DNA of 63,254 bases, the filler included, from Pelomyxa schiedti (taxonomy: Eukaryota > Protista > Evosea): assembly GCA_020536535.1 (NCBI GenBank). It is 6 parts of 6 records of this genome, joined end to end, with 100 filler letters (N's around TTAATTAATTAA, not from the genome) between each part and the next. Parts side by side here need not be neighbours in the genome. Positions count along the whole stretch, not along the records: positions 37,028 to 63,254 come from JAHLWZ010000500.1; 5 more parts are not named here. One strand, 5' to 3'. A model generated the notes under the pieces. It saw nothing but the letters and a program-made list of their open reading frames with translations. It did not search any database and was not told where the DNA came from. The position numbers and the translations under genes were made by a program. Below, piece after piece: positions 37,687 to 60,175 of this stretch (positions are counted from its first letter, which is position 1; every line of letters begins with the position of its first letter).

Positions 37687-38240
37687 TTATACTAGCTCTT
37701 CAGACCACGTTGCCTCAACTGGCATTGCGCCAGTGCAGGTTGCCTGAGCTGTGATGATGGTGGAAGCAAATTTCAGTTTGAAGGTCAACTGAGGGCGTTT
37801 GTTGAAGGGCTGCCCAACCCCAGGAATGTTTTTCACTTCCAAACAGCCGGGTACCTTGTGCACCCCAGGGTCATCAGGATAGCGTACATTGCGGCTCTTT
37901 GACCTGTAAATCTCGAACTTCGCAGAGTCTTGTGTGGAGCTACCTGGGGAAAACGGGAAAGATACTTCGGCGTCAACTGCAATGGTGTCTCCACACCGCA
38001 CGAATACGTGAAGAACGTCACATTGCCTCTGCCCATCAATTTCAAATGTGGGCCTGCCTGGGTGTCGAGGAGCAACCTCTATTGTCGACACAGCGTAGGT
38101 GTAAGGCATGCATCTCTTTGTTATACACAGCGGATGTTCACCAAATATAACAGCTCCTTCCAAGACAGATGACAAAGGAAAGTTCGGGTTACACACCTTC
38201 CTCTCTGGAGTTTGAAGGGCCGTTGTCATGATTCTGCGGA
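37687..38240 (-). CDS. HSPA12-like Hsp70, gene A, C-terminal part (end of NBD plus beta-sandwich domain)
   Basis: SVLEGAVIFG..ITKRCMPYTY...F.P....QDSAKFEIYRS...FASTII; 38120-38240 is identical to 42342-42462. Confidence 0.88.
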
Positions 38241-38466
38241 NNNNNNNNNNNNNNNNNNNNNNNNNNNNNNNNNNNNNNNNNNNNNNNNNNNNNNNNNNNN
38301 NNNNNNNNNNNNNNNNNNNNNNNNNNNNNNNNNNNNNNNNTTTTACGAAAGGGGGTTCACCATCACTGGGACTGGAATAAAGTGATGTGGGAAAAAGTAG
38401 TGAAGTGGGGGAGAATTCTCTTTTATACCCATTCTTGGTCAACAGGCACCAGTAATTACTTCGCTA

Positions 38467-41400
38467 TCAGGATTGTGCCAAGAACACAAAGGCTTTCTGG
38501 TGGGCAAAACGAGGGATAACACAGAACTCCACTCTGCCAGGAAAAGGCCTTTGCTGGTATTGTAAGTATTAGAAAGATCATAACATGGACGAGAGCACAC
38601 CGTGGGAAAAACTTGCATGAAGTCCCTGTTAAATTGTTCTCCTGGCATGGGATAGCTGAATTCACAGGATGAGCACAGCAGGTAAATTTGTACGATGGCA
38701 ATGCAGGTTGTCCTGCAGGCTGGAAGGTTGAGTGACTGTTCCACACAAATCCCAAGTTCTTCATTGGTTTGAGCGTGTGCTGGCTTGGTGTCATTTCTCT
38801 CTTTCACAAGCTCCACACATTTGTCCCACATGTTTTTACATAGTATGGCTTGTTGCCTGGGATCTTTGCGTACAGAGGGCAGTACATCCAACGCGAAGTT
38901 GGTCAAGGTGGAATTAAAAAACTCCTTTGCCTGGATTATAACCTCATAGGCTGCTATAGAACCCGAGGCCCTAGATTTATTTGCCTTTTGAAGCTCAGCA
39001 GTTCCTGTGTTCTTTCTGGTTTTTATTGCACTTCGCACTTGCTCTTGAAGCATCATCGCATCTGTATTTTGCTTACATAATCCAACAATTGTGTTTGGTG
39101 AGTAGACTTTCTTGATGTTTCTGAGAACTGACTGCATTTCTTCAAGTTTTTGGGTCATGGTCTTGGTTGTGATTTCATCATCAGAACTAATCTGCTTCAG
39201 CTTGGACTCAACAGCTTCTACACTGTTGCCAAAGTTAATACTTGGATCACCGATTCTTTCAATCTGCCCCTGTGCCCACAATGAGAAAGCCATGGCTTTG
39301 GCCATGTAGTTGTGGAAGTTATCATTTGCAATCCCCCTGTTGAGACTCTTAGAAACTAAATGTCCTTTTTCAGTTTTCAGTGTATGAAGGTCATCTAATA
39401 ACTTCTTAACCTCCCGAAAGAGGTCTTGTGCCCTCTTTTTTCCAAAAAGACTAAGAAAGAGAAAAGTGATACAAATGAAACACACGTCAATATCACTGAA
39501 CTGAGCCTCCTTTAGCAAGGCAAACTGTGATTTGACGGATTTCCATTTATTGTGGTTTTCATTCTCCCAGTCCTTAACGACTTGAAGAAGCACTGCCTCC
39601 TGGGATAACAAGTTAAAACAAAAAGTCTTACAGTAAGACTACTTGAGCTTTAGCTTCTTGCAACGTAACAATATTAGCTGTTAAAGATGAGAGGCAACGT
39701 TGGCCCTTATTTGCCCAATCGAGTAGTGCTCTTGCAGTGGTAAAGAACTCTTTTTGTATACGGTCTGGTGTGGTTTGCCTTAAAAAACCGATTTGCAATT
39801 TTGGTGATAGGATCATAACCATACTTTTCCAATTCGGCACTTATAACTTGAAAGTAGCTGTACTCCAGTATTTCCATTTTCAACCAGGTACTTTCAATTT
39901 GCTTGGAACAGTGCAATGGAGGTTGGCGGTGTAATTGAGATTGAGCTTGTGTGATATCCCTTTCCAAATCAGCAATTTTCTCCTTTTGTGTTTGTTTGTG
40001 TCTCTTTGTTGCAAGGTAAATTGTATGCTTCCAATGCACCTCTTGAGCAGAACGAAGAGTATTGTCAAATTTTGGCGGGATTTTGAAGAACTTCATCTCT
40101 TTGCACACCCAGGCCTCAAGCTTTTTTTTTTTTTTTGTTAAGTAACAATAACTTTTTAATGATGATGGCCAATTTACCTCACAAGAGTTTTGGAAATTAG
40201 AGACAATCGCAGTCAAATAATTAACAGTGGGGTCTGATTCCAGTTTCAGATTGGCAACATGTGATTGCAAACTTGTAGCTTTTGAAGTTAACTGAGGATC
40301 CCATAAGGATGAAAAGAGTTTCAGCCCCAAATCTGGGTCTTCTGAGAGCCCACAAAACGCGTCTCTCTTTCTCATAAGATCTTGTTCAAGATCATTCGAA
40401 TCTCTAATTAGCTGCAGTTCTGTTTGGTGTCTCACTTTGATAGCTTCTACTCTTTTCTGAAGTCGTGACTGCTCCTGTCTGGCTGCCTCTATTTCCCGAC
40501 AAAGTACAGAAGTACTGAGTATTTCAGCAGGCATAGGGGCTGTACTGAATTTCAGTTTATCCACAGACATATCAAGAACTTCCGCACAACTACTTGTCAC
40601 TTTTTCAATTCCGGTTTCATATGACTTTTGTGTGCAATCAGAGAGCCTCTTTTCTAATTCAAGAGGCTCCTTTTCTGCCCACGCTTTAAAGTTAACTGTC
40701 CTGCCAAGAAGACGCAGTGTATTTCCCATTGCAGCCAGACTTGAATTCACCTCCTCCAGCTTGAGCGTGATCCCCTTGTTTCGTAATATTACATGGAAAT
40801 GGAATTTGCGTTTCAGTTACCAGCATATCATGGTAATTCTGACTCTCCAACTCTTGCTTCTGTAAAGACAATCTTTGGTATGTTGGATGTCTTTTACGGT
40901 ACTCCACCTCTAGTACTTTGACTGCCTCCTGTCTCAACAAAAAAAAAGAAAAGAAAAGGGTACAGAGGGAAGTGAACAGTAAGGTGTAGAAAGGGAGACC
41001 CGATACTATTGTTTACCTGTATATTATTGGAAGAAGAAGAGGCAAGCTTCTTAGAGGAGCTTGTAAACCAGCTAAGAAATGCATTGGTTTCTTTTAAGAA
41101 TATTTGCTGGTTTTCCTGGTTTTGTCTTTGCCTTTTCTCTTCATTATGAAGCAGAGTTGCATATCGTACTTCAGATTTTGTCATCTCATTCCAACTGTTC
41201 TCCATCACATCAGCCCTTTTCCTAAGCTGTGCAGAAAGTTGTGGGCAACCACCCTTCGAAAACTCTTGATGCAATGTATAGAGGCTACTTTGAAGTTGTT
41301 TTCGTTCCACATCTTTCCCAGATTTTTCTGCAGTGAAGCAATCTCTCTTGTTTATGAGAGACTGAATTCCAGTGAGAGTGTTATCATAATCTGTTCCTTT

Positions 41401-43606
41401 CTGGAAATATTGTGTCCAGTGTTGAATCCATCCAATAACCTGCAATATTGTCAGGAGTTAAAAAAACGGACTTGGTGAAGGATGTGGCAGCAATACAACC
41501 TTTTCCATGGATTTATGTGCATTCATTGCTTTGCCACACAGGAGGAGTGTTTCAGTGAATTTTGTCATCCATTGATCAGCGGCAGTCACTCGTGCCTTGG
41601 AAGCAGAATGTCGAAGCTTGTTCAGTTGTTCGTGGAGTGAGTGCAAATCAGATCGAAATGACGATGTAATTTGTTGGAGGTTCATGTCAGGCCGACTGGT
41701 GAGAATTTCAAACTCCTCGTATTTGCCTTGGAGCTTGCATTCAAGTTCTTTGTAATCCTTGGAAGACTGATACTCCGTCACATATTTTTGTTGCATGGAA
41801 TCGACTTTTTTACAAAAGGATTCATGCCCCTCATTCGCTGACTTCATTTCCAAAGAGATTAAATCTGTTGGTTCCGCCTTGAGCAATTCAAAGATTTCTG
41901 CTATTTCATTCAACTTCTTCTTTGATTCGGCGATGACCTCGGAACAACTTCTCTCCGCAAATTCTATGTCCGCTTCAACCTGCTTCTCATGGTGACGGAT
42001 CCTTTCTTCCAATTCTGAAGTTTCCCTCTGAATCCAAGCAGCAAACTGTGTTGTGCCTTCACGAAATTGCAGGGTTTTCTTCAACTGAGGAAAGTTTGCA
42101 CAAACAGCCTGATAAGTGGACTCGACTTTCTACGGAGGAAGTGAATCAAAAATACATAGACAAAAACAAATAAAAACATGCCTTGACACCTGGAAAACCT
42201 CCAACCGGACGCCGCTTTGACATTTCTTGGAAGAGTATTGTTAAAGAGTCCATTGTGCTAATCTAGAATGGATTGGATCAAAAGGCCACCATTCGCCAAT
42301 TGAAACTCACCTCCCCATGTGTGTCTGTCATGCGTCTCTTCGTTATACACAGCGGATGTTCACCAAATATAACAGCTCCTTCCAAGACAGATGACAAAGG
42401 AAAGTTCGGGTTACACACCTTCCTCTCTGGAGTTTGAAGGGCCGTTGTCATGATTCTGCGGAAGACTTCACAACGGCTGAGTCCACCAACGAGGTAAATT
42501 GCGCCGACGCGCACATCGCCAAGGTTGGGGATGATGTTGTTCAAGATGTGGTCGCTCGCGCGAGTCGCCTGCTCGACAATTTTATTCGTGAAAACGGATG
42601 CGTCCAGCCTGAGTCTGCTTGCTTGATAAGATTGGATCAAGGGGCTGTTGAAGTCAGAAATAAGACTGGCGAGCTTCGGCTTGCCCATTGCTTTGAGCGC
42701 GTCGTAGATGCAGCTCGCAGAGGCATTGATCCTTGTGGTAAGTGCATTCACACTGAGCTTCGCTGACTCGATTTCATCTTCCAGTTCGAGCCAATTGAGA
42801 TCCGCCTTCGCTCTTTCCAAGACATCGGAACCGAACACCTGTTGAAGAAAGCCAATGACAGTCTCGTTTACATAAGTGGACCCCCACGCACCGCCGCTGG
42901 GAGGATACAGTTCAACGAGTTCCGTTTCAGTCTCGCACTTGTGAACACCGATATCAACAGTGCCTCCCCCAGCATCCACGATGATGTAAGTGGATCCGAC
43001 TTCGAGCCCCAGGCTGTGTTTTATTGCAACCGAGGCCGCCTCGGGCTCCAAAGCGAGTGTAACGTCTTGAAGTCCGGCATTGGATGCGCATCTGACCATG
43101 AAAGACTTCGCGCCCTGGTCCCATATCGCTGGTACAGTCAGTATCCACTTGACGTTAGCCACCGTGGTTATGAATTCTCTGTTCATGTGTCCCAGCGCCA
43201 TTCCGACGATGTATTTTAAGACCCTGGAGATAACCAGTTCCAGGGGAAGGTGCACTTCTGGTTTGTTCACACATTCTATTTCGCGTGTGGCCGACGTTCC
43301 ATATATAAGTATCCTGAAGTTCCTGAAGTAATAAACTTCTTCGACTTGTGTGGGGTCTAAATTTTGCATGAAAACCCTTGCCTCCCGTCCGAACTTGATG
43401 GCTTCGTGTGGTTCCGTTGCATTAAGCACAACTTCGGTGGGTACTTTTTGTTGTCCTGATACCGTCTCAGGCCACTCGGCAAACACGATCTGCCCACTTC
43501 TGTTTCGTGCGTCACGAAAGGCGTAGCCACTGCACGCGGAACCCAAGTCAATGGCGCAACACACTGGTCGATCAACCGCTGAGGACTCCACGACAGCTGT
43601 ACACAT
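38467..43606 (-). CDS. Gene B: HSPA12-like ATPase domain + spectrin (alpha-actinin-type) repeats + C-terminal GrpE/Mieap-like domain
   Basis: Intronless NBD (AIDLGS, WILTVPAIW, ALEPEAA, VDAGGGTVD, SGGAWGS, VGGLS). A GTGAGT donor after ..TDTHGE splices in frame to W-containing helical repeats (LEAW..F...FDNTL..W..ME..Y...EL). The last exon encodes QRPFPGRVEFCVIPRFAHQKAFV. The gene model is hand-predicted. Confidence 0.8.
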
Positions 43607-44897
43607 AAAGAGAGACCGTCCCCTCCAGCCGATTTTTGGTACTTTTTCCCTTCTTTGGACCAAATAGGTTTTTCATCATCAGCTTAGGGTTATGGACAAG
43701 GAAAATCGCCAAGTTTCACGTGAAAAATCGGAAACCCAAGCAACGGTAGTTTGTAAACACTTCGAGTCCCGTTTCACACTCAACACAAGTGGTGCGGAGG
43801 AGTTACTGCACTAACTCTCCCAGTTCTCAGCTCACACACTTATGGTGGCTAGTTAATTAAAGTTTATTTTTATTTTTCTATCTTTAATGGTCTAGTTGTT
43901 ACAGCCAGGACTTGGCCATAAGCAGGCCTTGCAAACACCAGATTGTTTTGGCTTCTCTCCCCCAGCTTTAGCTATATTGCACGGAACTGTTTACCTTTTC
44001 ATGTGGACCTATGAAAAACTCTAATTTCTTCCCTAAAAGCTGCATAAAGGATTGACTTGGCGCACAGCATGAACAGGAAGGCAATGTATGTATGCCACTG
44101 TTTTTTTCCTTGTTTTGGGTACCACCAATGCCAAGTTCTAGGGCAGTGAGACTCCGCCTGCTTACTGACTGGGAAGTTTGGTCTTGCCTCTTTCTCTTCC
44201 TTTCGAAATTGTTCCTTATTGCTTGGAACTCGGTTTGTACCCACCATGGCCCCACTAACATGCCAGCAGATACCCGGACTGATGGAGCACTGCACTGACC
44301 AACAGCGCCACCTCAAAGTATGCTAATTCTGGCCTCCCTACCACTTTCTCCTGTGTGCGCCTCGCACCAGAGCCCCAGCAGCCCACCACACACAAAAAAA
44401 AGAAAAAAACAAGCTGAGGTTTGGGATCTTTGCATACAGAGGGCAGCTGAGGTTTTTCCCTGTTTGGCCCATTTGACACACGTCATCCACGCTGCGCATC
44501 ACCTCGTAGTGCCGGACGCGGGGAAAACCTCCACAACATGGGTGGGTCACTGACATCAGTTGCCGGGAGCAACACCTGCGAGTTAGTTTGTGACTGCGCT
44601 TGAGAGTGGGACCACTGAGACTGTGATGGTGAGTAGTAGAAGGAAAAGAAAGAGAAATCATTCCGAAATAAAGAATGATCTTTTCTTTTTCTTCACCAAA
44701 ACCCGCCATCTTTTTTTCGTTGAAACATCAACATTCTGATTGATGTCAGGATTTTGTCAGGAACACAACGGGCCCATTTTACGAAGGTTCACCATCGCTG
44801 GGACTGGAATAAAGTGATGTGGGAAAAAGTAGTGAAGCGTGGGAGAATTCTCTTTTATACCCATTCTTGGTCAACAGGCACCAGTAATTCTTCGCTA

Positions 44898-47800
44898 TCA
44901 GGATTGTGCCAAGAACACAAAGGCTTTCTGGTGGGCAAAACGAGGGATAACACAAAATTCCACGCTTCCAGGACGTGGATTTTGCTGTTAGAGCAAGTGT
45001 TAGCAAAAAAAAAAGGGCCAGCCACAAAGAGTTCTGGAGCACACCGTGGGAAACACTTGCATTGTGTCCTTGTTAAACAGTTCTCCTGGCATGGGGTAGC
45101 TGATTTCACTGGATGGCGAGCACAACAAGTAGATTTTTGCCGTAGCAATGCATGTGTTTCTGCAGGTATCAATTGGAAGGTTGAGGGACTGTGCAACAGT
45201 AATCCCAATTTCTTCAGTGCTTTGCGGGCGTTCTGGATTGGTGTCACTTCCCTCTTTCACAAGCTCCACACATTTGTCCCACATGTTTTTACATAGTATG
45301 GCTTGTTGCCTGGGATCTTTGCATACAGAGGGCAGTATGTCCAACGCGAAGTTGGTAAATGTTGCATTAAAAAACTCCTTTGCCTGGATTATAATCTCAT
45401 AGGGGGGGGTCAAAGGAGGGATAGAAGGGAGAGTTGTAGGAGGAGTATGCTGAGTTGGAGAGAAATTAGGTGCTGAAGTTGCAGATGGAGCAACTGGTGC
45501 CCTTGATGCAGATAGCCCTGGGCATGGCTCAGTGTGTCCACCAAGTCGTTGATATTCAGCCCTCAAGGCGTCATAACTTTGATGCAGAGATACAAGTTCT
45601 TGCTTGTATCTGCTGGTTTCTTCTTCATTTGCAGGTTGAATAATGCCCTATTAGTTTAGTTCAAATTAGGTGAAAATGATAAATCAGGTATAAAATGAAG
45701 GCTGGACCTTGGTTGGGCATTCAAGCATCTTATTCACGAATATCAGTGAGGATCTTAAATTCCACATGTCTTTGGAAGACTGGAAAGCTGTTATATTTTT
45801 ACTGGCATGGCTTATTTGTACCAGTTCTGTTATATTATTTGTCTGCGCAATGAAGTTCTTATTTAGTTTGATGTGTCCGTCAATAGCCTTCAAAAGAGCT
45901 AGATTTCTGTTTTCTATCCCATTTACTATGGCCATACTTTGTTGTTCTATGGAATCTGCAGTTAAGAGGCATTCAGTGGGTGCAATATGCATCTCATTTA
46001 TGAGAGCCCACTGCTTTTCAATGGCTTGCTTCCTCTCCTGCAATTGCTGCATTAATTCCTTCTTCTCTCTCTCTAGCTCTTCTTTGAGTCTCAGCAGCTC
46101 TTCTATACTACTATTCCTAAACATAGAAGCCCGCATGATCATGCACTTTGATTGTACCCACAGTACAAAGTTGAGGGCTGCAATATTTAAATCACCTAGA
46201 ATCTGCTCCTTTCTCTCCTCATTCCGTAGTGCAGCTTCCAATTTTTCTTTTTTGGTTTTTTTGTAATCGATAAGAGATTGCCATAGTCGAAGCATATCCG
46301 CAAAACCCGTTTGTATTTTCTGGAGGGTAAATAATGTGTAAGTACTGAATAAAATGTGGGATTGTTGTAACACAAACCGGGGAATCGAAAAAGTCGTTTG
46401 TGAGTAAATAAGTGGCATACTCCAAGAGGCATCGTAACGAAATCTCTTTGTTGATTCGCTCATTGCACTTCCAGAACTCAATAATCTGGTTTAATACAAA
46501 TGAGTGCCCAGAAGACCTATCAAATAGCAGCTACTCCTCCGGTCTACAAACCTGCACTTGGGCACCATGTAACGTGCTGACTGGGTCGAGTCTTGTGAGT
46601 GTGCCTTTGATCTCAGCACATGCAGCTTGGTGCTTTTTCATTTCTTTTGTGAATTTCTTCTCAACATCATCAAGTTTTCTTTGTCTGTTAAGGAAGTTCT
46701 TTTTGTGAGGCTATAATAAAAAGGATACACTTGTACCTTTCTAGTTCTGCTCCGAGTTTTGCAAAGTGTTCTTGCTCCGTAGTCTCCATCTCTGCCCATA
46801 GTTCTTCGACCACTGTGGGTTTGGATCTATCTGGAATATCAAATGACAGATGTGACAGTGATGTAAAGTAGGCATTCAGTTGAGACTTCTCTTCAGATTT
46901 ATGGATTTTTATTGTGATGTGCTGACTGTACACTTCTTCCAATTTTTGAGCACCTGATAATGTGTTGTCAAATTTAGCCCCCCTAAGCAACTTTAGCTCT
47001 GCTTTTATCCAGTCAATAACCTGGTATTAGCGGAAAAAATGAGACTAAAGAATTACAGATAAAAACGAATACCTTTGATGACAAGGAGCAGTATTCTGTT
47101 TGAATTTCCGTCTGCACACTATTTTTCAGCTGAAGGAATTTATTAGACAGTGAGTTGCTCTTTGCCTCAACTTCTCTACTTATGGTTTCTGTCTTCTTTG
47201 TGCTTGCTTGAATTCCAGTGTGCTGAGTATCCAATAAGTTTAGTTGTTTTTGGAAATCATCCAATTGTGTTCTCCATTTTTGGGCTTTCTTAACAAGGTC
47301 ACAGTGTGAGGACTCTGATGAGAATATTTTCTGATACTCCAAAAGAAGGTTCTCCAGCTTTGCTGCCTCCATTGAAAATAATCGGAACTTGTTTGCCAGT
47401 TGGAGCTCGGCGTCACCATTGCTCTTTCTTGTTTCCATTGCACTCTTTAGCTGTCCCTGGAGTTGTTCCACTTGGAGCCTTTGTTTACATAATTCATCAA
47501 TGGTGCGTGGTGGATAGACTGTCTTGATATTATTGAAATCCAATTGCATATCTTCAAGTTTTTTTGTCATCTCTGTGGCTGTCATTTCATCAAAGGAGCT
47601 AATCTGGTGCAACTTGGATTCAATGGCCTCTACCCCAGTTCCAAAGTTGAGACTTGACTCCCTAATGATCTCCATCTTTCCACGGACCCACTCAACAAAT
47701 GCAAAAGCTTTTGCCATATAGTTGTTGAAGTCATCTTTTGCAGTACCCTGTCTGAGATTTTTGGAAACTAGACGTCCCTTTTCATGTTGAAGTGCGTCAA

Positions 47801-50800
47801 GCTCATTGAGCAACTTGTCAACCTCCTTTAAAGTGTCATCTACCCTCTTTTTACCCATGAAAGTAAGAAGGTGAAAAGGAGAGGAAATTACACACCGCAA
47901 TATTTATGAAAGAACCACTCTTTAGCAGTGAAAAGTGTGAGTGTATTAGTGACAACTTGCTCTGGTTTTCAGTTTCCTCTTTTTGAACCCGAAGAAGCAT
48001 AGCCTCCTGGATAGGGTAAAGAAAAATGAAACACCAATGGAACAAACCTGATCTCTTGCATCTTTCAAAGTAGCCACGTCAGCTGTTATAGTTTGGAGAG
48101 CACTTTTACTCTTCTTTCCCCAATCAGATAGTGCCATAGCAGTGCCAAAGAATTCGCGTTGCTTATTGTCTAGGTTTGTTTGCCTTAAACGATTCGATTT
48201 ACAAAAAATTGATCGAAAGGAAAGTAGCCATTGCATACCGGGCCAATTCTGTGGTGATACTTTGAAAGTAGGCATTCTCCAGCTTTTCCATTTTTAACCA
48301 GACACTGTCAATTTGCTGTGAACACAGCAAAGGAGGGGAGTAGTGGAATTTCTCTTGGGCTTTTATGATAGACTTTTCTAAACCCACATAATTCTCCTTT
48401 AGTGTTTGTTTTGATCCCTTTATTGCCAGGTAGTCCTTGTGCTTCGCGTGTAATATTTGAACACAATAGAGTGTGTTGTCAAATATTGGTGCGATTTTGA
48501 AGAATTTGATCTTCTCAGACATCCAGGCCTCAAGCTTTTTTTTTTTTTTTTTTGGAAAAAGATGTATGGGTAATTTTGTCATTAAATGCTTATAGATGGC
48601 ACACTTCAGTAGACTTTTGTATATTAGAGACAACATCTGCCAAATAACGTGCCAATGCTGGGGCTGTCTTACTTTGGCACTTGGATGCAAGTGATTGCAA
48701 ACTTTTAGCTTTTGTATCTAATTGAGGCTCCCACAATTGTGAAATACGTCCGAGTTCTGTATCTTCTGTGAGCTTACAGAAGGTTTCTTTCTTTCTCATA
48801 AGTTCTTGTTCAAGCTCAGAAGAATCTCTGATAAACTGTAACTCTGTTTCGTATCTCTTTTGGATTGGTTCAACCCTTTTAGGTAATAATGTTTGCTCAA
48901 GTTTTACTTTCTCCATCTCCTGAGAAAGGGTAGTCATGGGCAGGGCCATTGGCTTGGCCAGAAATGTCTCATAGATTTGTTTCAGTTTATCACCAGAAGT
49001 GTCAAGGACTTGTGCACAACTATTTCTAACTTTCTCTATGCCACTATCATATGACTTATTGGTGCAATCAGAGAGCCTCTTTTCCAGCTCAACAGGTTCC
49101 TTTATTGCCCATACTTTGAAGTCAACTACCCCAATGAGGAACCGTAGTGCATTCCCCAATGCATCCATAGCTGCCTTCACCTCTTCCAGTTTGGATACAA
49201 CCAGCTTGTTTGTAAAAGTGACATTCAATGCAAATTGCATTTAGGTTACCTGTATATCATGATAATCCTGATGGGTCAAATCTTGTTTCTGCAAAGACAA
49301 ACCCTGTAAGGCAGGAAACTTTTTCCGGTATTCAGTTTGGATCACCTTGAGGGCATCCAGCTGTCTTGGCCAAAAAATGGCAGAGGTAAAGGTGAGATAA
49401 GGAAGGGGAGACATAACAGTGGTTGTCTAACCTGGGCTTCAAGTGACCCAGAAGGGGAGAGCCCAGAGGATTTTTTGCTCCAGGAGAGCAGAGCACTGGC
49501 GTCTTTGAAGAAAGTGCATTGTGTCGCGTCGATTTGTTTTTGCCTGTTCACTTGAAATGAGAAGGAAACCTTGTTTTGGAAATAAACCTTTCGATCTCTT
49601 GTTCCATTTGGGTAGTATATCCTCCTTCATATTTTATCATCTCATTCCAATTGTTCTCCATCACATCAGCCCTTTTCCTAAGCTGTGCAGAAAGTTGTGG
49701 GCAACCACCGTTCAAAAACTCTTGATGCAATGCATAGAGGCTACTTTGAAGTCGTTTTCGTTCCACATCTTTCCCAGATTTTTCTGCAGTGAACCCATCT
49801 CTCTTTTTTCTGAGAAACTGAATTCCAGTGAGAGTGTTATCATAATCTGTTCCTTTCTGGAAATATTGTGTCCAGTGTTGAATCCATCCAATAACCTGCA
49901 ATATTAACAGGAGTTAAAAAAACAAATTTGACAATGGTCCAACCTTTTCCATGGATTGGTGTGCATTCATTGCTTTGTCACACAGGAGGAGTGTTTCAGT
50001 GAATTTTGTTATCCATCGATCAGCGGCAGTCACTCGTGCCTTGGAAGCAGAATGTCGAAGCTTGTTCAGTTGTTCGTGGAGTGAGTGCAAATCAGATCGA
50101 AATGACGATGTAATTTGTTGGAGGTTCATGTCAGGCTGACTGGTGAGAATTTCAAACTCCTTGTATTTGCCTTGGAGCTTGCATTCAAGTTCTTTGCAAT
50201 CCTTGGAAGACTGATACCCCGTCACATATTTTTGTTGCATGGAATCGACTTTTTTACAAAAGGATCCATGCCCCTCATTCGCTGACTTCATTTCCAAAGC
50301 GATTATGTCTGTTGGTTCCGCCTTGAGCAACTCAAAGATTTCTGCTATTTCATTCAACTTCTTCTTTGATTCGGCGATGACCTCAGAACAACTTCTCTCC
50401 GCAAATTCTATGTCCGCTTCAACCTGCTTCTCATGGTGACGGATCCTTTCTTCCAATTCTGAAGTTTCCCTCTGAATCCAAGCAGCAAACTGTGTTGTGC
50501 CTTCACGAAATTGCAGGGTTTTCTTCAACTGAGAAAAGTTTGCACAAACAGCCTGATAAGTGGACTCGACTTTCTGTGGGAGGTAGGATTTAAGAAGAAA
50601 GAAGGACAAAGTAAAAGCATGCCACAATATCTGGAAACGATTCACTCTGAAGCTGATTCACCTTTTCCTGCAAGACAGGTATGACTAAAGACTCCTTAGT
50701 CTCAATCTAAAGTGGATTAGGGCCAGGGAGTTACGAGTTTTCAACTGAAATCAACCTCAGATGACACTTTACCCAAAGGTTCTGATGTTGATGTCCAGAT

Positions 50801-51829
50801 TTTTTCAAGAGATACTTTTTTGCACCACTCCCGAATCTTGTCTGCCATTTGGAAGAATTCTTTTTGGACCTCAACAAGTTGCTGTTGCCTTGTAGATAGT
50901 TTGAAAAAAGAAGGTTTGGAGGGAAGAAAGAAAACCTGGTCAAAATCTGGGAGTAATTTGCTTCCAGTGTTACCATGTTGACCCAACTTTCCTCAATGCT
51001 CTCTAAACGGCAAACTTCACATCTGGGGTACTTTGCTACTATTTCTGAAAGAGAAGCCACAAGCTGTTGTTTCAAGGCCTCCTTTTCACTTTCTCTCTTT
51101 GGTTTCTCCTTCAGGTATTTTGCATACTTACTGCATCGAAGCATTATTCCTTCAATAGTATTGGTGGTTGTTTCTGGTTTTGTTTGAAAATCCAACAGGT
51201 ATTCTTTCACCCATAGTGCAATCTTGAAATGATAGTGAAAATTTTATAATCACGGAAAAAAAAAACAGGCTCACGTCATCAGCTTTTGTGTTAAAGCTTT
51301 TCATTTCTTGCATATCTTTGACACATAGTGATATTTGGTCCTTCATTTTTACCGAAGTTTCTGATGCATCACCACAAGGAGTTTTCAGTTTATTCAGCTT
51401 GTCTTCTAGGACTGTCAAAGTTGCGGCTCGGCTTTTCAGAGACTCTAAATCTGTTATTTGTCCCAACTGTGGTCCTGGCGGCTCTGTCATTAATGAGAAG
51501 GTGTGGTCAATGTCCGTTCCTTCCTTGGTTATGTAGTCACTGACTTGTTGCAGTGCTTGAAAATATAGGGTTGTTTGAGCCGGATTAGCCGCCTTGGTTT
51601 TTGCTACTTCTTCCAAGGAGGCAATCTTTTCAGAAGTTAGGTGGAAACGCGAGAGAGAACGCACAATTGGCGCCAGGTGGTCACAATTCTCGATAGTTCT
51701 AGAAGTTATTTGCTGCAGGACATACATAGGGTCCTGCTGTGAACTAGAAAACTTAAAACCACAATGAAATTGCAATTTTGGCACACCTAAAATATACGCC
51801 CATTGCCATTCACTCTGGCCCTACCGAAT
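44898..51829 (-). CDS. Gene C: long spectrin-repeat protein with C-terminal GrpE/Mieap-like domain (5' end unresolved)
   Basis: Multi-exon paralog of gene B with extra repeats. It ends YEIIIQAKEFFN..NFALDILP..MWDKC..SYPMPGELFNKDTMQVFPT|QNPRPGSVEFCVIPRFAHQKAFV. Confidence 0.8.
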
Positions 51830-51929
51830 NNNNNNNNNNNNNNNNNNNNNNNNNNNNNNNNNNNNNNNNNNNNNNNNNNNNNNNNNNNNNNNNNNNNNNN
51901 NNNNNNNNNNNNNNNNNNNNNNNNNNNNN

Positions 51930-52378
51930 GCCACCGTGGTTATGAATTCTCTGTTCATGTGTCCCAGCGCCATTCCGACGATGTATTTTAAGACCCTGGA
52001 GATAACCAGTTCCAGGGGAAGGTGCACTTCTGGTTTGTTCACACATTCTAGTTCGCGTGTGGCCGAAGTTCCATACAGATGCATCTTGAGCCTGTTGAAG
52101 TAAAGAACTGTGTCGACTTGTGTGGGGTCTAAATTTCGCATGAAAACCCTTGCCTCCTGTCCGAACTTGATGACTTCGTGTGGTTCCGTTGCATTAAGCA
52201 CAATCTCGGTGGGTGCTTTTGGCAGTCTACCAAATCCGAGAGCCGTCTCGGGCCAGTCGGGAAATACGATCTGACCGCTCCGATTGCGTGAATCACGGAA
52301 CGCGTAGCCTGTACATGCGGTACCAAAGTCTATAGCACAACGCACGTGTCGATCAGCAACTGGCGGCGCCGCAGCCAT
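51930..52378 (-). CDS. HSPA12-like Hsp70 N-terminus (probably the 5' part of gene A)
   Basis: CAIDFGTACTGYAF, KAPTEIVL, FGQEA and LKMHLY motifs; 51930-52050 is identical to 43158-43278. Confidence 0.88.
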
Positions 52379-52522
52379 CGGGTGAAAAAAAAACAAACGC
52401 AGTTAGTTCAGCTGAATCAACTGGTGATTTAGCACTTGCCGGACCTGCCCAACTTGGGGGATGGGCCCGTTTTGGGACACAACCAAAACTACAAAAACCA
52501 AAAAAGAAAACCACGAAGCTAC

Positions 52523-54063
52523 ATGGCGTACGTGCGTCTCCCAGAGTACAAAAAGGTGTGTTGTGCAATCGACTTCGGCACGTGGGGCACCGGATTTGCA
52601 TTTAGGGATTTTCTTGTACCCGGGACGACGCGTTATAGTACATGGCCACTGACAGACTCACCGAAAACACTCACGGAGGCACTCGTCGGGATTCAACCAC
52701 CTCACAAACTGAAGAGTTTCGGTTGTCAAGCAAGAGACGACCTGACCCGAATGACCCAAGCAGAAAGGGACCAGGTGATGCACTTCAAGCAGTTCAAAAT
52801 GCAACTCGCAGGAGAGGGCGACCGAAACTGGATGGTGAAAGACAACGAATACCCCGATCGCACAATCAACTTCAAGTTGCTCACAACGCGGTGCATAGAA
52901 TACGTGTGCGGGGTGGCGATGACTCAGATCAGCGCACAGTTCAGCACCGTCACCCCAGAACAAATACAATGGGTTCTTACCGTGCCGGCAATTTGGGACC
53001 AAGCGGCGAGGCGACTGATGTTGGATGCGGCTGAGGATGCGGGGCTCTTTGGTGTCATGATTGCTCTGGAACCTGAGGGGGCTTCTCTTGCCATAAGAGC
53101 AGACTTGCTTGATCTGCAAGTTGGAACCACTTATTTGATAGTGGACGCAGGGGGTGGTACCGTCGATATAACACTACATAGATGCACAAGTAACACCGAA
53201 ATATGTGAACTGTATCCCCCTTCTGGAGGTCCATGGGGATCTGCATCAGTCAACACTGGAGTCATTTCCTTCTTGAAAGATATTTTTGATCCAGATGGAG
53301 ATGTGTTTCCCCATGCAAAAAAAACTGAGTGGTATCAACTGGAAGATGATATTGAGTCACTCAAGCTTTTTGCCCGCGATACAGACGGAAGCACCGCCCC
53401 TATGAATTTCGATGCTTCCGTGATATATGGTGCTCTGCAAACTTTGGGCAAGCCAGAATTTTCAACCTTTGTTGATTCGTACAATACTTCTCCCACCAAA
53501 TCAACCCCGCCAATAGTAGTCTACCGTGAAAGTTCATTGAGACTCCCGACGTGTATCTTTACCAACATCATAAAACAAAAAGCACTGGCAACAAGTTCAC
53601 ACATTATAACCCATATTCTTCCAGAGATTACTGAGACCGTAAAAGTGTTCCTTGTTGGTGGATTCTCAAGAAGCGAGATTTTCAGAGATATCATCAAAAA
53701 AGAGCTCTCGCCTCTTCCTGTGAGTTGGCCCCACTTTCCAATCACTGCTGTCATGCAAGGGGCCGTTGAATTTGGAATCAATCCCATGTCGATCAACAAG
53801 CGATGCGTTCCATACACTTACGCCGTGCTCACTTCAGATTTGGCAGTGAACCACCCCGGAAGGCTTGCGTTTTGGACGGAGCAAGGCGAGAAGCGGTGCC
53901 ACGTGCTCAAGACCTTTGTGAAGAGCAAGGATATCATCAATGTCGAAGAGGTGATCCGGCATACCTTTTGCCCAATGACTCCACAACAAGAAAGCGTTGC
54001 GTTTACGATATACAAATCAAAGAAGAGAGAAATCACTTACCCGGAGGAGAACGGAGTCATCAT
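52523..54063 (+). CDS. Gene F: HSPA12-like Hsp70 with intact ATPase motifs, cut by a gap; probably continues into the vWA tail at 59675-59934
   Basis: AIDFGT, FKMQL, WVLTVPAIW, ALEPEGA, VDAGGGTVD, IESLK and VGGFS motifs; intronless. Confidence 0.92.
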
Positions 54064-54389: not shown

Positions 54390-54591
54390 TTTGATCCAGA
54401 TATGCATTCCACAGATATCTCTCGTTAAAGTTACCAAGTACTTGCTTGAAATAACAAAAGTCAGACTTTTTAATTTCCATAAACCACGTTGGAGTCCAGC
54501 AGCACCCAACTCACCGTCGAGGATATGCTGAATGTTGCTGTCAATGCCCCCACTTTTTCAGACTCTTTCCAATTTCAGGAATACTAACTAC

Positions 54592-56901
54592 ATGGCGCAC
54601 GTGCGTCTCCGAGAGGACAAAAAGGTGTGTTGCGCCGTCGAAATTGGCACGTGGGGCACTGGCTTCGCATTTAGGGATTTCGCTCGCACCATACCTACGC
54701 AATACGGCACATGGACACTGACAGACGCACCGAAAACACTCACGGAGGCACTCGTCGGGGTTCAACCACCTCACAAACTGAAGAGTTTCGGTTTTCAAGC
54801 AAGAGACGACCTGACCCGAATGACCCAAGAAGAAAGAGACCAGGTGATGCACTTCAAGCAGTTCAAAATGCAACTCGCAGGAGAGGGCGACCGAAACTGG
54901 ATGGTGAAAGACAACGAATACCCCGATCGCACAATCAACTTCAAGTTGCTCACAACGCGGTGCATAGAATACGTGTGCGGGGTGGCGATGACTCAGATCA
55001 GCGCACAGTTCAGCACCGTCACCCCAGAACAAATACAATGGGTTCTTACCGTGCCGGCAATTTGGGACCAAGCGGCGAGGCGACTGATGTTGGATGCGGC
55101 TGAGGATGCGGGGCTCTTTGGTGTCATGATTGCTCTGGAACCTGAGGGGGCTTCTCTTGCCATAAGAGCAGACTTGCTTGATCTGCAAGTTGGAACCACT
55201 TATTTGATAGTGGACGCAGGGAGTTATAGTATTGATATAACAGCACATAAATGCACAAGTGACACCGAAATATGTGAACTGTATCCCCCTTCTGGAGGTC
55301 CATGGGGATCTGAATCCATCACCACTGGAGTCATTTCCTTCTTGAAAGATATTTTTGATCCAGATGGAGATGTGTTTCCCCACATAGAAAAAAATGATTG
55401 GTATCAACTGGAAGATGATTTAGATACCCTGATGCTTCTTGCCCATGAGGGCCCCACCACTATGAATTTCGATACTTCCGTGATATATGGTGCTCTGGAG
55501 ACTTTGGGCAAGCCAGAATTTGCAACCTTTGTTGATTCATACAATTCCTCCCCCAAGAGATCAACACCACCCATACAGGTTTATCGTGAAGGTTCATTGA
55601 GACTCCCGACGTGTATCTTTACCAACCCCATAAGACAGAAAGCACTGGCAACAATTTCACACATTATAAACCGTATTCTACCAGAGATTACTGAGCCTGT
55701 AAAGGTGTTCCTTGTTGGAGGATTGTCACGAAGTGAGATATTCAGAGATATCATCAAAAAAGAGCTCGCACCTCTTCCTGTGAGTTGGCCCCACTTTCCA
55801 CTCACTGCTGTCATGCAAGGGGCCGTTGAATTTGGAATCAATCCCATGTCGATCAACAAGCGATGCGCTCCATACACTTATGCCGTGCTCACTTCAGATT
55901 TGGCGGTGAACCACCCCGGAAAGCTTGCATTTTGGACGGAGCAAGGCGAGAAACGGTGTCACGTGCTCAAGACCTTTGTGAAGAGCAAGGATATCATCAA
56001 TATCGAAGAGGTGATCCGGCATACCTTTTGCCCAATGACTCCACAACAAGAAAGCGTTGCGTTTACGATATACAAATCAAAGAAGAGAGAAATCACTTAC
56101 CCGGAGGAGAACGGAGTCATCATGGTGAAAGGTGGACTGACACTCAACAACGTGCCAAACCGCGGCAGACCGGTCAGTGAGAGAGAAGTTGTTGTCACAC
56201 TCAATTTTGGATCGACTGTGATTGCCGTTGATGTTGCACATGGCTCCCCCGCTTCCGCTCCCGATGCCGCTGCTGCTCGCCCTGCGACCTCTGTGAAGTG
56301 GATTGAAAGTATATCGTCCGTTTCGGAGGAGCAACTTCACTACCACATCGTGTTCTGTTTGGATGAGTCGGGATCCATGTGCGGCGATCCGTGGCGCGAA
56401 GTGAGCGAAGCAGTTGATGCGTTCGTCAAGTGCAGACTCCAAAAGTGCCCAACCGGAGACACCACATCCGTTGTGACATATAATCACGCTGCTCGACAGA
56501 GGCACAGTGGCCCACTTTCGTCTTTGGCTCCTGGAATTTTGGGAACAAACTCTGGTGGTGGAAAGTGCTTTGCAGTCGCGTTGAGTTTATGTGATCGAGT
56601 GCTGATGGCCACACGTGCTGAAAGCTGTTCAGGTGGAAGAACACCGATTTTGTTGTTCATGTCCGACGGCCAGTGTGACAATGGTCTGCAACAAATGAAG
56701 GATGTGCATGCTCACCACAAAGACAGTGGGCTGAAGATCTTTGTTGTTGGGTTTGGTGCCGGCGTCAACACTGCACAACTCGAAGCGCTTGCTGCTGCCG
56801 TGTGTGGTTCTTATTCTGTTGGGAAGAATGGTGCCGAACTGGTCAACACTTTCACCCACATCTCATCAGGGTTATCGTCCTTTCTCAAACACAATTGTTG
56901 A
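54592..56901 (+). CDS. Gene G: HSPA12-like Hsp70 with degenerate nucleotide-binding motifs, fused to a C-terminal vWA domain
   Basis: Intronless 769-aa ORF and paralog of F. The vWA domain starts at ~56341: IVFCLDESGSM...LLFMSDG...IFVVGFG. Confidence 0.93.
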   Translation: MAHVRLREDKKVCCAVEIGTWGTGFAFRDFARTIPTQYGTWTLTDAPKTLTEALVGVQPPHKLKSFGFQARDDLTRMTQEERDQVMHFKQFKMQLAGEGDRNWMVKDNEYPDRTINFKLLTTRCIEYVCGVAMTQISAQFSTVTPEQIQWVLTVPAIWDQAARRLMLDAAEDAGLFGVMIALEPEGASLAIRADLLDLQVGTTYLIVDAGSYSIDITAHKCTSDTEICELYPPSGGPWGSESITTGVISFLKDIFDPDGDVFPHIEKNDWYQLEDDLDTLMLLAHEGPTTMNFDTSVIYGALETLGKPEFATFVDSYNSSPKRSTPPIQVYREGSLRLPTCIFTNPIRQKALATISHIINRILPEITEPVKVFLVGGLSRSEIFRDIIKKELAPLPVSWPHFPLTAVMQGAVEFGINPMSINKRCAPYTYAVLTSDLAVNHPGKLAFWTEQGEKRCHVLKTFVKSKDIINIEEVIRHTFCPMTPQQESVAFTIYKSKKREITYPEENGVIMVKGGLTLNNVPNRGRPVSEREVVVTLNFGSTVIAVDVAHGSPASAPDAAAARPATSVKWIESISSVSEEQLHYHIVFCLDESGSMCGDPWREVSEAVDAFVKCRLQKCPTGDTTSVVTYNHAARQRHSGPLSSLAPGILGTNSGGGKCFAVALSLCDRVLMATRAESCSGGRTPILLFMSDGQCDNGLQQMKDVHAHHKDSGLKIFVVGFGAGVNTAQLEALAAAVCGSYSVGKNGAELVNTFTHISSGLSSFLKHNC

Positions 56902-57220
56902 GTGAGCTTTGTTGTGTAAAAAAAATCCATTATCCTTTCTGACTAATTTTCTTACTACTTACAAACCCAGTGCAAAATGCCAGGAAGGAAGGGGAAATTG
57001 AAAAAAAAAATCTTTCCTTGTGTTTGTGTCACCAAACTTCCAGCGTGGTGTGGTTGTGCAGGGCGATTCGCCATGGCAACCATCGACTAGTCTTGGTAAA
57101 TCTGGTAAATAATATCCAAAGTCTTGGTATGTGGATGAAGGTCTCCATGTGGAATATGAGGTCTTTATCTTGCAAGTATTATGAATATTACAAAACTATT
57201 TGGTCATTATCTTACTCAGT

Positions 57221-58037
57221 TTAATCTTCCAGTAATCCAACAGCTTTGGCCTGTCGATTTTGGTTGTAATAAAAAGCCGGCAGTATATAAAAATCCACTT
57301 TTCCTTTCATTTTGTTTTGCTATCGCATTTAGTCAAAAATTGGCAAGAAGAAAAAACACACTGCTGGAAAAACTTCAATATCGTTTATTGTCAAGCTATC
57401 TGGTTCACAGTAGGAATATTCATCTGGTGACACCAAAGTATGCACACAGATATTTAACATAGAGCAACATATTTCCTGTATCTTGGCACTTTTAGGGAGA
57501 TCAGACAGCTCAAGCATTTCATGGCAAAGATTTTCAAGAACTTCTGTGGTGACTGGAGTACCAGCTGGAGACTGATAGTCCACAATATGCCTGCTGCAGT
57601 TGAAGCACAGGCCCCACATTTTTTTGCACATCATAGCCTGGTTTCTAATGTTACAATCAATCTGTGGAAGTTCATCAAGAACCAAGTTCACGAACATCTT
57701 GAAGAAAACAAAAATTAGTCCCACACTTGCTAAATGTATGTACATTTCTGAAGTCCTTGTACCACAAGAAAATCTCATATTGTGGAACATGGGACACAGA
57801 GTATTTCAAGTGAGCTACCGTTACACTTTGAGCCGTGGCGCAGTGCTTACGAGGTGGTTGCACTCTGGGCTTTTTGCGGTGGTGGTGATGATGGTGATGG
57901 TGGTGATGGTGCTTGTGGCTGTGGGCCGTGGGTGTCGCCGTCGGTGCCGGTTCGGAACCCGTATTTGTTTGTTTAACACCGAAGTGCTCGCTTGTTGCAC
58001 TGTCCTCATCAGGGGCTTTGTGAAAGCAAGAACCCAT
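57221..58037 (-). CDS. Gene D: small N-acylation-motif (MGSC), His-rich protein with GrpE/Mieap-like domain
   Basis: Three exons: ..YEIFLWYKDFRN|MFVNLVLDELP..QAMMCKKMW..IEVFPA|QNKMKGKVDFYILPAFYYNQNRQAKAV. Intron positions are shared with E and with B/C. Confidence 0.8.
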
Positions 58038-58137
58038 CTACTGGTCCAGTTCGAAAGGAAAAAAAGGGGCTTCCGGTCCGTTGATGAAGTCCTGTCCCAT
58101 CAAAGAACAATTTGGTAAAAAAAACAAGCAAGCAAGT

Positions 58138-59574
58138 ATGGAGCAGGAGTTGAACTGCATTACTTTGACCCTTCGTGGTGTTCTCTACACGCAGCAGAAA
58201 ACCCTCAATTTGGTGCAGTCTATGATAACGTGGAATAGAAACGAATGCGACAGGCAACTATCCGAGATCGCGTCGCTTTTGGCCACCACCTCCGGTCACA
58301 TCTCGGCCTTCGAAAACGAGTTCACATTTCTACGCAGACAGGCACCAGTTAACACTTCGTCGGCAGCCTCTTCTTCAGCTTCCCCCCCACAACACAAGGT
58401 AGTAACCGTTCCTATTGCTCCTGATTCAGCACAACACAGAGCAATACCACCAGACACACCGGCAACGCCCCCGTTAACAGCACCATCAACGGTACAAGCT
58501 GCTTTGCCTCCTCCTCCAGATTCCCGTTTCGGTTCTCCTGTCGGAACAAATGCTCCCAGTACTGCCGTTGGGGAGAAACACAATCATACACAGCATACAC
58601 CTTCAATTCCAGTTCCACGCAAGGTTCAGGGTACAACAGCTCAGCCAAGAAATACAGGTGGCTCAAGTCAACTGGTACCAGGACAAGCTGGATCAAGAAT
58701 ATGTTCTGCCAGTGCTATGAGGATTGCACAGAGTAGTCATTTAAATACAGAGCCCCCAAGGCGATCCTCTCCGACCGTACCAATACCACACGGTCCCTCA
58801 GTGTCATCACGTATGCAAACAAGCTCCCACCAGCCTTCACATCACAAGCACCCTGTTTCAAGTACTCAAGAAAACAAACTGCAACCGCAACCGCAGCAAC
58901 AACTGCAACAGCCGACACAACAACAACTGCAACAGCAGACACAACAACAACCGCACTTTGTTCCAAGTACTCAAGAAAACAAACTGCAACCGCAACAACA
59001 ACCACAATCGCCCATGCCACAAATATCAAATTCACTGTCACAACGAATTAGCGTGTGGCGCGCGGCTCCGCATTATGAACTTCTAATTTTGTTGAAACAA
59101 TTTAAAAATGTAAAAAGCCACTTCAACCTCTGTAATGACCAAAAGTAGGACTTGACGAACTTTGTATTGGATACTCTCCCCAATGCAAACTTTAAGACGC
59201 CAGAGCAGCAAGCACAAATATTGCATGAGATGTGGAAATTTCTTGCTGAAAGAGTCTCCCAAATCTTACAGCAGCAGAACCCTGGAGTTCAAGATCCTGA
59301 GAACGTTATTACCGAAGCCATTAACAGTTTGATCACTTGGTTGAAACCAATTGGACAAGAGAAAACTATTTGTGGACTATGTGAAGTGATGGTCAAACTA
59401 TGCTTTGCCACCATTGGCAAGCCAGAGTATGGATTTGTATTCTTGGAGCCAAAAACACCCTTTATTCCATCACAGATGGATGTGTTTCCCAGCTTGCAGG
59501 CACCACCCCAATCTGGGATTGTTTCACTGTGTGTTATACCAGGCCTCACATATGGTAAGACCATCCAAGCACGT
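58138..59574 (+). CDS. Gene E: short coiled coil + P/Q/S-rich linker + GrpE/Mieap-like domain (end in gap)
   Basis: YELLILLKQFKN|DLTNFVLDTLP..QQAQILHEMW..FVFLEPKTPFIPSQMDVFP..GIVSLCVIPGLTYGKTIQAR. Confidence 0.82.
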
Positions 59575-59674: not shown

Positions 59675-59934
59675 CACCGATTTTGTTGTTCATGTCCGAC
59701 GGCCAGTGTGACAATGGTCTGCAACAAATGAAGGATGTGCATGCTCACCACAAAGACAGTGGGCTGAAGATCTTTGTTGTTGGGTTTGGTGCCGGTGTCA
59801 ACACTGCACAACTCGAAGCGCTTGCTGCTGCCGTGTGTGGTTCTTATTCTGTTGGGAAGAATGGTGCCGAACTGGTCAACACTTTCACCCACATCTCATC
59901 AGGGTTATCATCCTTTCTCAAACACAATTGTTGA
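59675..59934 (+). CDS. vWA C-terminal tail, second copy (probably the 3' end of gene F)
   Basis: Near-identical to 56642-56901, with two synonymous changes and a different downstream flank. Confidence 0.8.
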
Positions 59935-60175
59935 GTGAGCTTTGTTGTGTAAAAAGAAAGTTGTTGTTTTGTGAAAGAAAAATCTTGACTCTTTTTCTTT
60001 TTTGGGTCTTTGGATCTGCCATGCGCTTCTCAGAGGCTGGAAAGACCACGAAACGGTAGAATGTGTCTGGTCCAGACATCTCAGAATTTTCTCTTCACAG
60101 GTGGCTCGAATGATACTATGAGATTAGGAGTAGAAGTAGTAGTAGCCGGCGAATAGTAAGTAGTAGTAGTCCTCT

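Follow-up and report, generated by a model that had tools for sequence, protein, structure and literature searches.

A predicted fusion in Pelomyxa schiedti of an HSPA12-like ATPase head to a spectrin-like rod with a MIEAP-like domain

The 63,254-nucleotide stretch of Pelomyxa schiedti DNA analysed here (the window) contains gene B, a 12-exon gene on the minus strand of record JAHLWZ010000500.1 (26,227 bp; assembly GCA_020536535.1; window position = record position + 37027). On balance we favour, from sequence comparison, the view that gene B is an old fusion maintained by selection, which would join an ATPase head of the HSPA12 type to a spectrin-like rod and a MIEAP-like C-terminal domain, and we regard this as somewhat probable. 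We infer that the fused messenger RNA is spliced and translated into a single protein, and likewise the ATPase activity of its head, its dimerisation and the partnership of its domains. A preliminary description of this DNA had proposed the span 38467-43606 and, within it, an Hsp70 nucleotide-binding domain (NBD) that lacks a substrate-binding domain (SBD) and is followed by a rod and a distinct C-terminal domain. Both the span and this order of domains coincide with the deposited coding sequence KAH3761889.1. Gene models of P. schiedti came from Augustus, with later refinement by PASA/EVM on the basis of transcripts (PMC8887013), and the deposited model, which has this exact structure, was counted in favour of a genuine fusion. 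The exon coordinates given below were obtained by exact mapping of the deposited protein.

43606-38467, minus strand: gene B, 12 exons; KAH3761889.1 (label P0124), "heat shock 70 kDa protein 12A", 1485 amino acids.
42311-43606, minus strand: exon 1, HSPA12-like NBD and linker; 432 codons, MCTAVV to HPLCITKRRMTDTHGE, stop-free.
42342-42462 (= 38120-38240), minus strand: stretch of 121 nt identical to the edge of contig a in an ungapped comparison.
42311-42334, minus strand: eight-codon tail RMTDTHGE, what is left, after divergence, of the C(M/V)PYTYAV found throughout the family.
42263-42310, minus strand: intron 1; 48 nt, GTGAGT to TAG.
42182-42262, minus strand: mini-exon 2; 81 nt, 27 codons, ISTMDSL to PGVK.
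42130-42181, minus strand: intron 2; 52 nt, the sole GC-AG intron among the 22 introns of genes B and C.
38955-42129, minus strand: rod, exons 3-11, all-helical spectrin-like repeats; exons at 42129-41500, 41439-41017, 40928-40821, 40774-40436, 40291-40178, 40120-39825, 39778-39643, 39599-39486 and from 39434 on.
38467-38954, minus strand: MIEAP-like domain; end of exon 11 (38954-38601), an intron of 47 nt, and exon 12 (38553-38467, including the stop codon).

The ATPase head and its junction with the rod

Gene B is flanked by a fragment of a full-length HSPA12-like gene (A) and by a rod paralogue (C), which is itself preceded by a second HSPA12-like NBD.

37690-38240, minus strand: fragment A (Pelo_6276, 191 amino acids), C-terminal half of a full-length HSPA12-like gene, on a separate contig.
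38241-38340: scaffolding gap of 100 N between the contig of fragment A and the 3' end of gene B.
44898-51784, minus strand: gene C, rod paralogue with a MIEAP-like tail; the deposited KAH3761890.1 (P0123, 1245 amino acids) covers 49240-44898.
51930-52396, minus strand: second HSPA12-like NBD, located upstream of gene C and represented by its first 155 codons, where the gap at 51830-51929 cuts it; 85% nucleotide identity to 43574-43158 of gene B.

The head of gene B matches the Pfam HSP70 family (PF00012) with 25.0 bits against a cut-off of 20.6, and MreB is also matched. Its closest relatives are the HSPA12 paralogues of P. schiedti (43-44% identity), followed by HSPA12A/B-like proteins of bivalves (about 30%), and the HSPA12-like family profile matches the NBDs of DnaK, BiP and Hsc70 at 1e-19. 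The phosphate-1, connect, phosphate-2 and adenosine motifs are present as DLGS, EPEAAS, DAGGGTVDI and YLVGGLSR, and VPAIWD, EPEAAS, DAGGGTVDI and LVGG are shared with the family. The reading frame of exon 1 is open upstream to position 43663. The likeness of gene B to the HSPA12A/HSPA12B-type Hsp70s of Pelomyxa, bivalves and other organisms lies in this NBD and its motifs, whereas it differs from them by a rod in place of the C-terminal domain and by an altered F..FKM.L motif.

The family C-terminal domain, from C(M/V)PYTYAV on, is absent from gene B and present in A, in the paralogues P0001 and P0002 and in the plus-strand paralogues. In the family-profile alignment, GAVIFGEH of gene B falls on residues 379-386 of DnaK; by alignment position, PLCITKR corresponds to the interdomain linker and C(M/V)PYTYAV to strand 1 of the SBD. 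The alignment with DnaK thus places the break just past the NBD and linker, in agreement with the domain-boundary position proposed before.

Two deviations of the head had also been pointed out, and both were observed. DLGS stands where the family has DFGT. The F..FKM.L motif is nearly invariant in the family, and among 10 aligned members gene B alone reads F..FRI.I (Lys to Arg, Met to Ile, Leu to Ile). Lys70/71 of DnaK/Hsc70 is catalytic. The placement of the FKM motif relative to DnaK Lys70 is ambiguous between hmmalign and MAFFT, the latter putting it at P90-F-K-I-I of DnaK. Altered catalysis is thus possible in gene B, given the replacement by Arg of a nearly invariant Lys that is an ambiguous counterpart of Lys70/71.

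Exon 1 ends at 42311, in phase 0, with HPLCITKRRMTDTHGE followed by the donor GTGAGT. The preliminary description held that gene B is identical to A up to HPLCITKR and then diverges abruptly. The identical run is real and perfect over 121 nt. The overlap with A covers only 47 codons, as A is a contig fragment that starts at the 100-N gap. The run has the length of the largest k used by SPAdes, which is why we read it as an overlap in the assembly graph: it most likely marks a branch at k = 121 from which the NBD path leads either to A (full-length HSPA12) or to gene B (rod). The divergence is not abrupt. Past the run, B and A remain homologous with scattered substitutions over about 30 nt; in the last eight codons of exon 1, 14 of 24 nucleotides still match (P = 5e-4), as compared with 6 of 40 after the donor. 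Relative to C(M/V)PYTYAV, six of the eight residues of RMTDTHGE are changed, from hydrophobic to polar, which fits an orphaned β-strand turned into a linker.

On the other side of the switch, from the GAG/GT boundary on, intron 1 is about 60% identical to internal sequence of its counterpart intron in gene C. The donor of gene C itself, GTAAAG, lies 14 nt upstream of the point where this alignment begins. The breakpoint therefore coincides with the present donor of gene B, which arose from former intron sequence. Identity between B and C stays at 60-67% over intron 1, the mini-exon and intron 2, and leaps to 97% right at exon 3, which starts at 42129 (KVESTYQ...). The rod exons are in frame after exon 1 and paralogous to gene C, as had been proposed for these repeats. 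The sizes of introns 1 and 2 are within the 41-144 nt range of the 22 introns of genes B and C, among which the donor of intron 1 has the best consensus. This donor keeps the frame with either acceptor, that of mini-exon 2 or that of exon 3, and the frame is still kept when the mini-exon is skipped (42311 to 42129).

The fusion may have arisen within a duplicated cluster of HSPA12-like Hsp70 and rod genes, by a rearrangement that would have deleted the substrate-binding-like C-terminal domain of an HSPA12-like gene together with the spacer and the initial exons of the rod gene that follows. An intron of the rod gene would have received the breakpoint, and there the NBD and its linker are now followed, in phase 0, by a GTGAGT donor.

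The assembly itself offers a competing account, in which the junction would be an artefact (an amplification chimera or a de Bruijn mis-join), the NBD continuing in fact as in A and the rod having upstream exons like those of C. The genome was obtained by whole-genome amplification of single cells (multiple displacement amplification, MDA), assembled with SPAdes --sc at a largest k of 121, and scaffolded with P_RNA_scaffolder, which joins contigs via RNA read pairs (PMC8887013). JAHLWZ010000500.1 comprises five contigs with four 100-N gaps in 26 kb. Contig a opens with the k-mer overlap to the NBD of gene B, and a second perfect 121-nt overlap, this time inverted, connects the end of contig b with that of contig e (51709-51829 and 63134-63254). 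The junction of gene B, however, sits within a single contig of 13.5 kb. A mis-join would leave a sharp breakpoint, whereas homology to A persists for some 30 nt past the overlap and gives way to homology with the gene C intron at 40% divergence, with a canonical donor right at the switch and the frame kept. As graded substitutions at both flanks are not expected from a chimeric read or a graph mis-join, we consider an artefact distinctly improbable.

Alternatively, the junction may be genomic and gene B may still not encode one protein. The head would then be an NBD-only product ending at the in-frame stop at 42278-42280, or a relic maintained by gene conversion; the 5'-truncated rod would be silent or made separately, starting for example at the Met of the mini-exon (ISTMDSL); and the 1485-residue model would be a merger made by gene prediction. 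The annotation pipeline did merge three adjacent genes elsewhere, in P0121, through introns that skip stop codons. Intergenic spacers in P. schiedti can be as short as 66-154 nt, and the mini-exon both evolves neutrally and contains an ATG. Against this, the introns of gene B are of typical size, unlike those of the P0121 mergers, and the donor of intron 1 is the strongest of the set. The mini-exon begins (42262) about 16 nt after the NBD stop, and its first Met follows that stop by about 24 nt, so that space for a promoter is scarce. A linker would fit both the change of the eight-codon tail to polar residues and the matching phase 0, and a second NBD-to-tail fusion is found at a paralogous locus. 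We judge separate products unlikely, though deserving of serious weight.

Several observations nevertheless count against the single selected fusion that we favour. Retention of intron 1 would end translation at the stop at 42278-42280. Mini-exon 2 is 61% identical to gene C at the nucleotide level, the same as its flanking introns, and shows no detectable coding constraint (ratio of nonsynonymous to synonymous rates, omega, 1.26). A word search of the protein collection with residues 300-640 of P0124 returned fragment A only and no transcript-derived protein across the junction, and the protein cluster of P0124 has a single member. In this MDA-amplified single-cell assembly, the NBD and contig a share a branch of the graph, and the deposited annotation merges neighbouring genes in the case of P0121. 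Finally, three nearly invariant residues of F..FKM.L are replaced in the head, by Arg, Ile and Ile, and its NBD may have been kept intact by conversion from a functional neighbouring gene and not by selection on gene B.

Age of the fusion

Synonymous divergence (dS) and omega were estimated by the Nei-Gojobori method, between segments of genes B and C unless another pair is named.

42129-41500, minus strand: exon of B versus C, dS 0.03.
41439-41017, minus strand: exon of B versus C, dS 0.09.
40774-40436 region, minus strand: exon of B versus C, dS 0.93, omega 0.34.
39599-38955 region, minus strand: exons of B versus C, dS 1.29, omega 0.25.
Tail domain of B versus C: dS 0.32, omega 0.36.
NBD of B versus the NBD copy upstream of C: dS 0.28, omega 0.42.

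This mosaic suggests an old duplication followed by later gene conversion of some segments. With omega values of 0.25-0.34, rod exons of gene B are under purifying selection at an old divergence. Both flanks of the junction are about 40% diverged from their paralogues by substitutions and belong to the old divergence class on either side, so that the chimera does not appear to be recent. The exon-shuffling chimera of the preliminary description is thus retained in part: a chimera of an HSPA12 gene and a C-type rod gene fits the data, and its recent age does not, given the divergence of the flanks and the dS of 0.9-1.3 in rod exons. The patches of high identity that gave an impression of youth are most readily explained by k-mer overlap or gene conversion, and the "recent chimera" signal came largely from the contig-edge overlap in a single-cell assembly. 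The locus would instead represent an old fusion kept partly young by apparent gene conversion.

The rod and the C-terminal domain

A spectrin repeat is built of three helices, spans about 106-120 residues and has a conserved Trp in helix A. In gene B, helix-A Trp motifs occur at residues 491, 673, 793, 878, 1001, 1117 and 1232, with a recurrence of about 115-123 residues. The AlphaFold2 (AF2) model of the rod is entirely helical, at low confidence (predicted local distance difference test, pLDDT, 47.7), and the best Foldseek matches of this low-confidence model are plectin SR7-8, β2-spectrin R14-16 and α-actinin (E 0.035). A single rod exon matched the α-actinin rod repeats of the PDB weakly (E 0.017). 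The Pfam Spectrin family (PF00435) gave no match in the rod open reading frames (ORFs) of gene B at E ≤ 0.1; in the paralogues P0123 and P0125 it reached 23.3 and 18.8 bits, below the cut-off of 29.9. The label "spectrin-like" is reasonable. The predicted long helices and short loops of the rod, and its recurring helix-A Trp, resemble those of the spectrin-type rods of α-actinin, spectrin and the plakin domain of plectin.

α-Actinin has an N-terminal calponin-homology actin-binding domain, C-terminal EF hands and four repeats in between, and its rods form antiparallel dimers. No calponin-homology or EF-hand domain was found in Pfam scans of the ORFs of gene B and the paralogues of P0124, and a rod protein devoid of both is not an α-actinin. 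The earlier description of a spectrin rod with α-actinin-like repeats is supported at sub-threshold scores; from α-actinin itself gene B differs in these missing domains and in a rod that does not reach the Pfam Spectrin threshold.

The C-terminal domain aligns among eight to nine paralogous copies over about 140 residues. Its AF2 model (pLDDT 84.7, predicted template modelling score 0.80) comprises four helices and a small β-sheet. Among eight members, no Pfam family was matched even at E 10, MIEAP (PF16026) and GrpE included. By structure, the model superposes on a MIEAP cluster of the ESM Atlas with a template modelling (TM) score of 0.70 by query, over 139 of 151 residues and at a root-mean-square deviation (rmsd) of 3.1 Å; 85% of the members of this cluster carry PF16026, and predicted models stand on both sides of the comparison. 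The second ESM Atlas match was the plant DUF641/GIL1_IRKI_C cluster (PF24994; TM 0.68), and three MIEAP clusters rank first (0.89) in a search with protein-language-model features. On the evidence of these models, the domain is MIEAP-like by fold and not a member of the family by sequence. In MIEAP/SPATA18 (PF16026) and plant GIL1/IRKI proteins, as in gene B, an extended helical or coiled part precedes an α+β domain of about 150 residues at the C-terminus. The P. schiedti tail differs from MIEAP in its lack of a PF16026 match and in that its own family profile, searched against 1.84 billion representative proteins, returns P. schiedti only (six matches, on two contigs). We know of no MIEAP protein with an N-terminal Hsp70 NBD.

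The preliminary description had taken the tail for a putative nucleotide-exchange domain. Such a domain, if GrpE-like, might act in trans, an antiparallel rod dimer presenting it to the head of the partner chain. GrpE is functionally tied to Hsp70 NBDs: it forms homodimers through long N-terminal helices and stimulates nucleotide release. Searched against the PDB with Foldseek, the tail returned GrpE chains at seven of the nine top ranks, including ranks 1-7, with weak scores (E 0.055, probability 0.54, TM 0.28). In VIA, GrpE gave the best or joint-best Z of 5.6-5.8 (weak, below 8) at 4.5-4.8 Å rmsd over 89-91 residues, in an alignment that covers the helices as well as the sheet; the β part alone superposes on GrpE/GrpEL1 at 2.7-2.9 Å over 45 residues. 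GrpE, with helices followed by a small β-domain, is thus the best PDB match by two aligners, the tail domain always lies beside or fused to Hsp70-like NBDs, and α-actinin offers a precedent for the antiparallel arrangement. Yet these scores are under the level at which either tool is meaningful, no sequence similarity to GrpE and no Pfam match were detected, and the helices of the tail are modelled as an intramolecular four-helix bundle and not as dimeric. The MIEAP fold matches far better, and to our knowledge it has not been described as an exchange factor. The exchange-factor assignment was not upheld; the resemblance to GrpE, drawn from models with weak scores, is a possible lead, and exchange in trans is in our view very doubtful.

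Under the fusion that we favour, the predicted product would be elongated, with an ATP-binding head that lacks a client-binding domain, about seven to eight spectrin-like repeats and a distal MIEAP-like domain. The head might serve as a nucleotide-driven switch or as a docking module on a rod that probably self-associates, and it may work together with the MIEAP-like domain. The locus would thus be a case of an Hsp70 NBD reused as the head of a cytoskeleton-like rod.

The paralogous locus and neighbouring genes

A gap-free paralogous locus is present in JAHLWZ010000804 (stretches L001 and L003). It contains HSPA12-like genes and an HSP70+VWA gene like that at 54532-56901 of the window, together with a 1539-residue rod protein with the tail domain (P0125) and two smaller tail-domain proteins (P0122 and P0126). 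L001/L003 had been considered as a syntenic locus of another species, which was rejected since it belongs to the same P. schiedti genome. The six proteins of the tail-domain family all adjoin HSPA12-like genes, in two clusters.

At this locus, KAH3757324.1 (P0121, 2074 amino acids; 10001-16883 of L003, JAHLWZ010000804.1) was found to consist of three merged genes. The first is a complete HSPA12 gene with its own stop at 11708-11710, the second an NBD-to-tail fusion that ends at 15678 and has degenerate NBD motifs (DLRGPTASI), and the third encodes another MIEAP-like domain, as part of a His-rich protein. The introns that merge them measure 278 and 82 nt and start just before stop codons. P0121 as a whole was therefore rejected as proof of a full fusion; the middle gene alone is an NBD-to-tail fusion. 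In that gene the C-terminal domain is also missing, the break lies about 25-30 residues beyond that of gene B, and introns of 44, 56 and 41 nt, of which two have GTAAGT donors, connect the NBD to a tail whose last part is the same MIEAP-like domain as in gene B. From these sequences, it is apparently a second fusion, broken independently of gene B. Two differently broken NBD-to-tail genes, and the location of all tail genes in HSPA12-like clusters, suggest that this combination is favoured.

At every occurrence the MIEAP-like domain is paired with an HSPA12-like ATPase, as neighbour or by fusion, which suggests a partnership. MIEAP-like rods might then be partners dedicated to HSPA12-type ATPases, either as a co-factor or as a target. 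Provided that the fusions are expressed, the MIEAP fold would work with an Hsp70-type ATPase, and this could extend to animals. Both the HSPA12-like and the MIEAP families are most abundant in molluscs among the matches listed. We know of no established molecular mechanism for either HSPA12-type Hsp70s or MIEAP-domain proteins. The broader proposal, to which we give only a small chance, is that the MIEAP-type domain is a dedicated HSPA12-type partner module, possibly a GrpE-like exchange factor or docking factor, and that the fusions and gene pairs of Pelomyxa could serve as a "Rosetta stone" for a pairing of MIEAP/SPATA18 with HSPA12A/B in animals. Literature searches returned no relevant link of HSPA12 to spectrin, MIEAP or GrpE, and the neighbourhood of one bivalve HSPA12 locus was uninformative.

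In the other long HSPA12-like proteins found, the fusion partners are CARD, Ig, TIR/NACHT, GTPase or VWA modules; no rod or MIEAP fusion was among them. Many carry PF27033, a Pfam family seen here solely on HSPA12-like proteins. Proteins of oyster, chytrid and other origin combine the HSPA12-like module with CARD, RIG-I-type CARD, TIR/NB-ARC/TPR, Ig or GTPase domains, a hint that immune-like multidomain proteins often make use of this module.

Rod-type long ORFs at 49300-51784 (minus strand) lie upstream of the deposited start of gene C at 49240, and 50573-49944 shares 94% amino-acid identity with exon 3 of gene B. As these ORFs extend to about 51784, the deposited model KAH3761890.1 probably lacks part of its 5' end. 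The inverted overlap of contigs b and e would place contig e, on its plus strand, upstream of gene C. The implied order, HSP70+VWA then rod, matches the paralogous locus, and the deposited scaffold order may be wrong.

Further genes were observed in the window. A single ORF of 789 codons at 54532-56901 (plus strand) encodes a full HSPA12-like protein with a C-terminal VWA domain (Pfam 6e-11). Its phosphate-2 motif is degenerate (DAGSYSIDI) and AVEIGT replaces AIDFGT, whereas the paralogue P0002 (795 amino acids) retains DAGGGTVDI; the protein is thus probably ATPase-dead, as judged from its motifs. Tandem HSPA12-like copies at 52519-54063 and 54588-56123 (plus strand) share 92% identity across 1.5 kb. 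A gap interrupts the first copy after PEENGVI, and this copy may thus extend into a VWA domain too. Two more ORFs with MIEAP-like domains, at 57332-57790 (minus strand) and 58081-59574 (plus strand), lie near His-rich and Pro/Gln-rich low-complexity ORFs and resemble the third gene of P0121 and P0122; no protein from the 57332-59574 region is among the six matches of the tail profile. Finally, 59675-59958, which starts at a gap, is 98.9% identical over 284 nt to 56642-56925, at the 3' end of the HSP70+VWA gene. This repeat is a near-identical copy or an allele that the assembler did not resolve.

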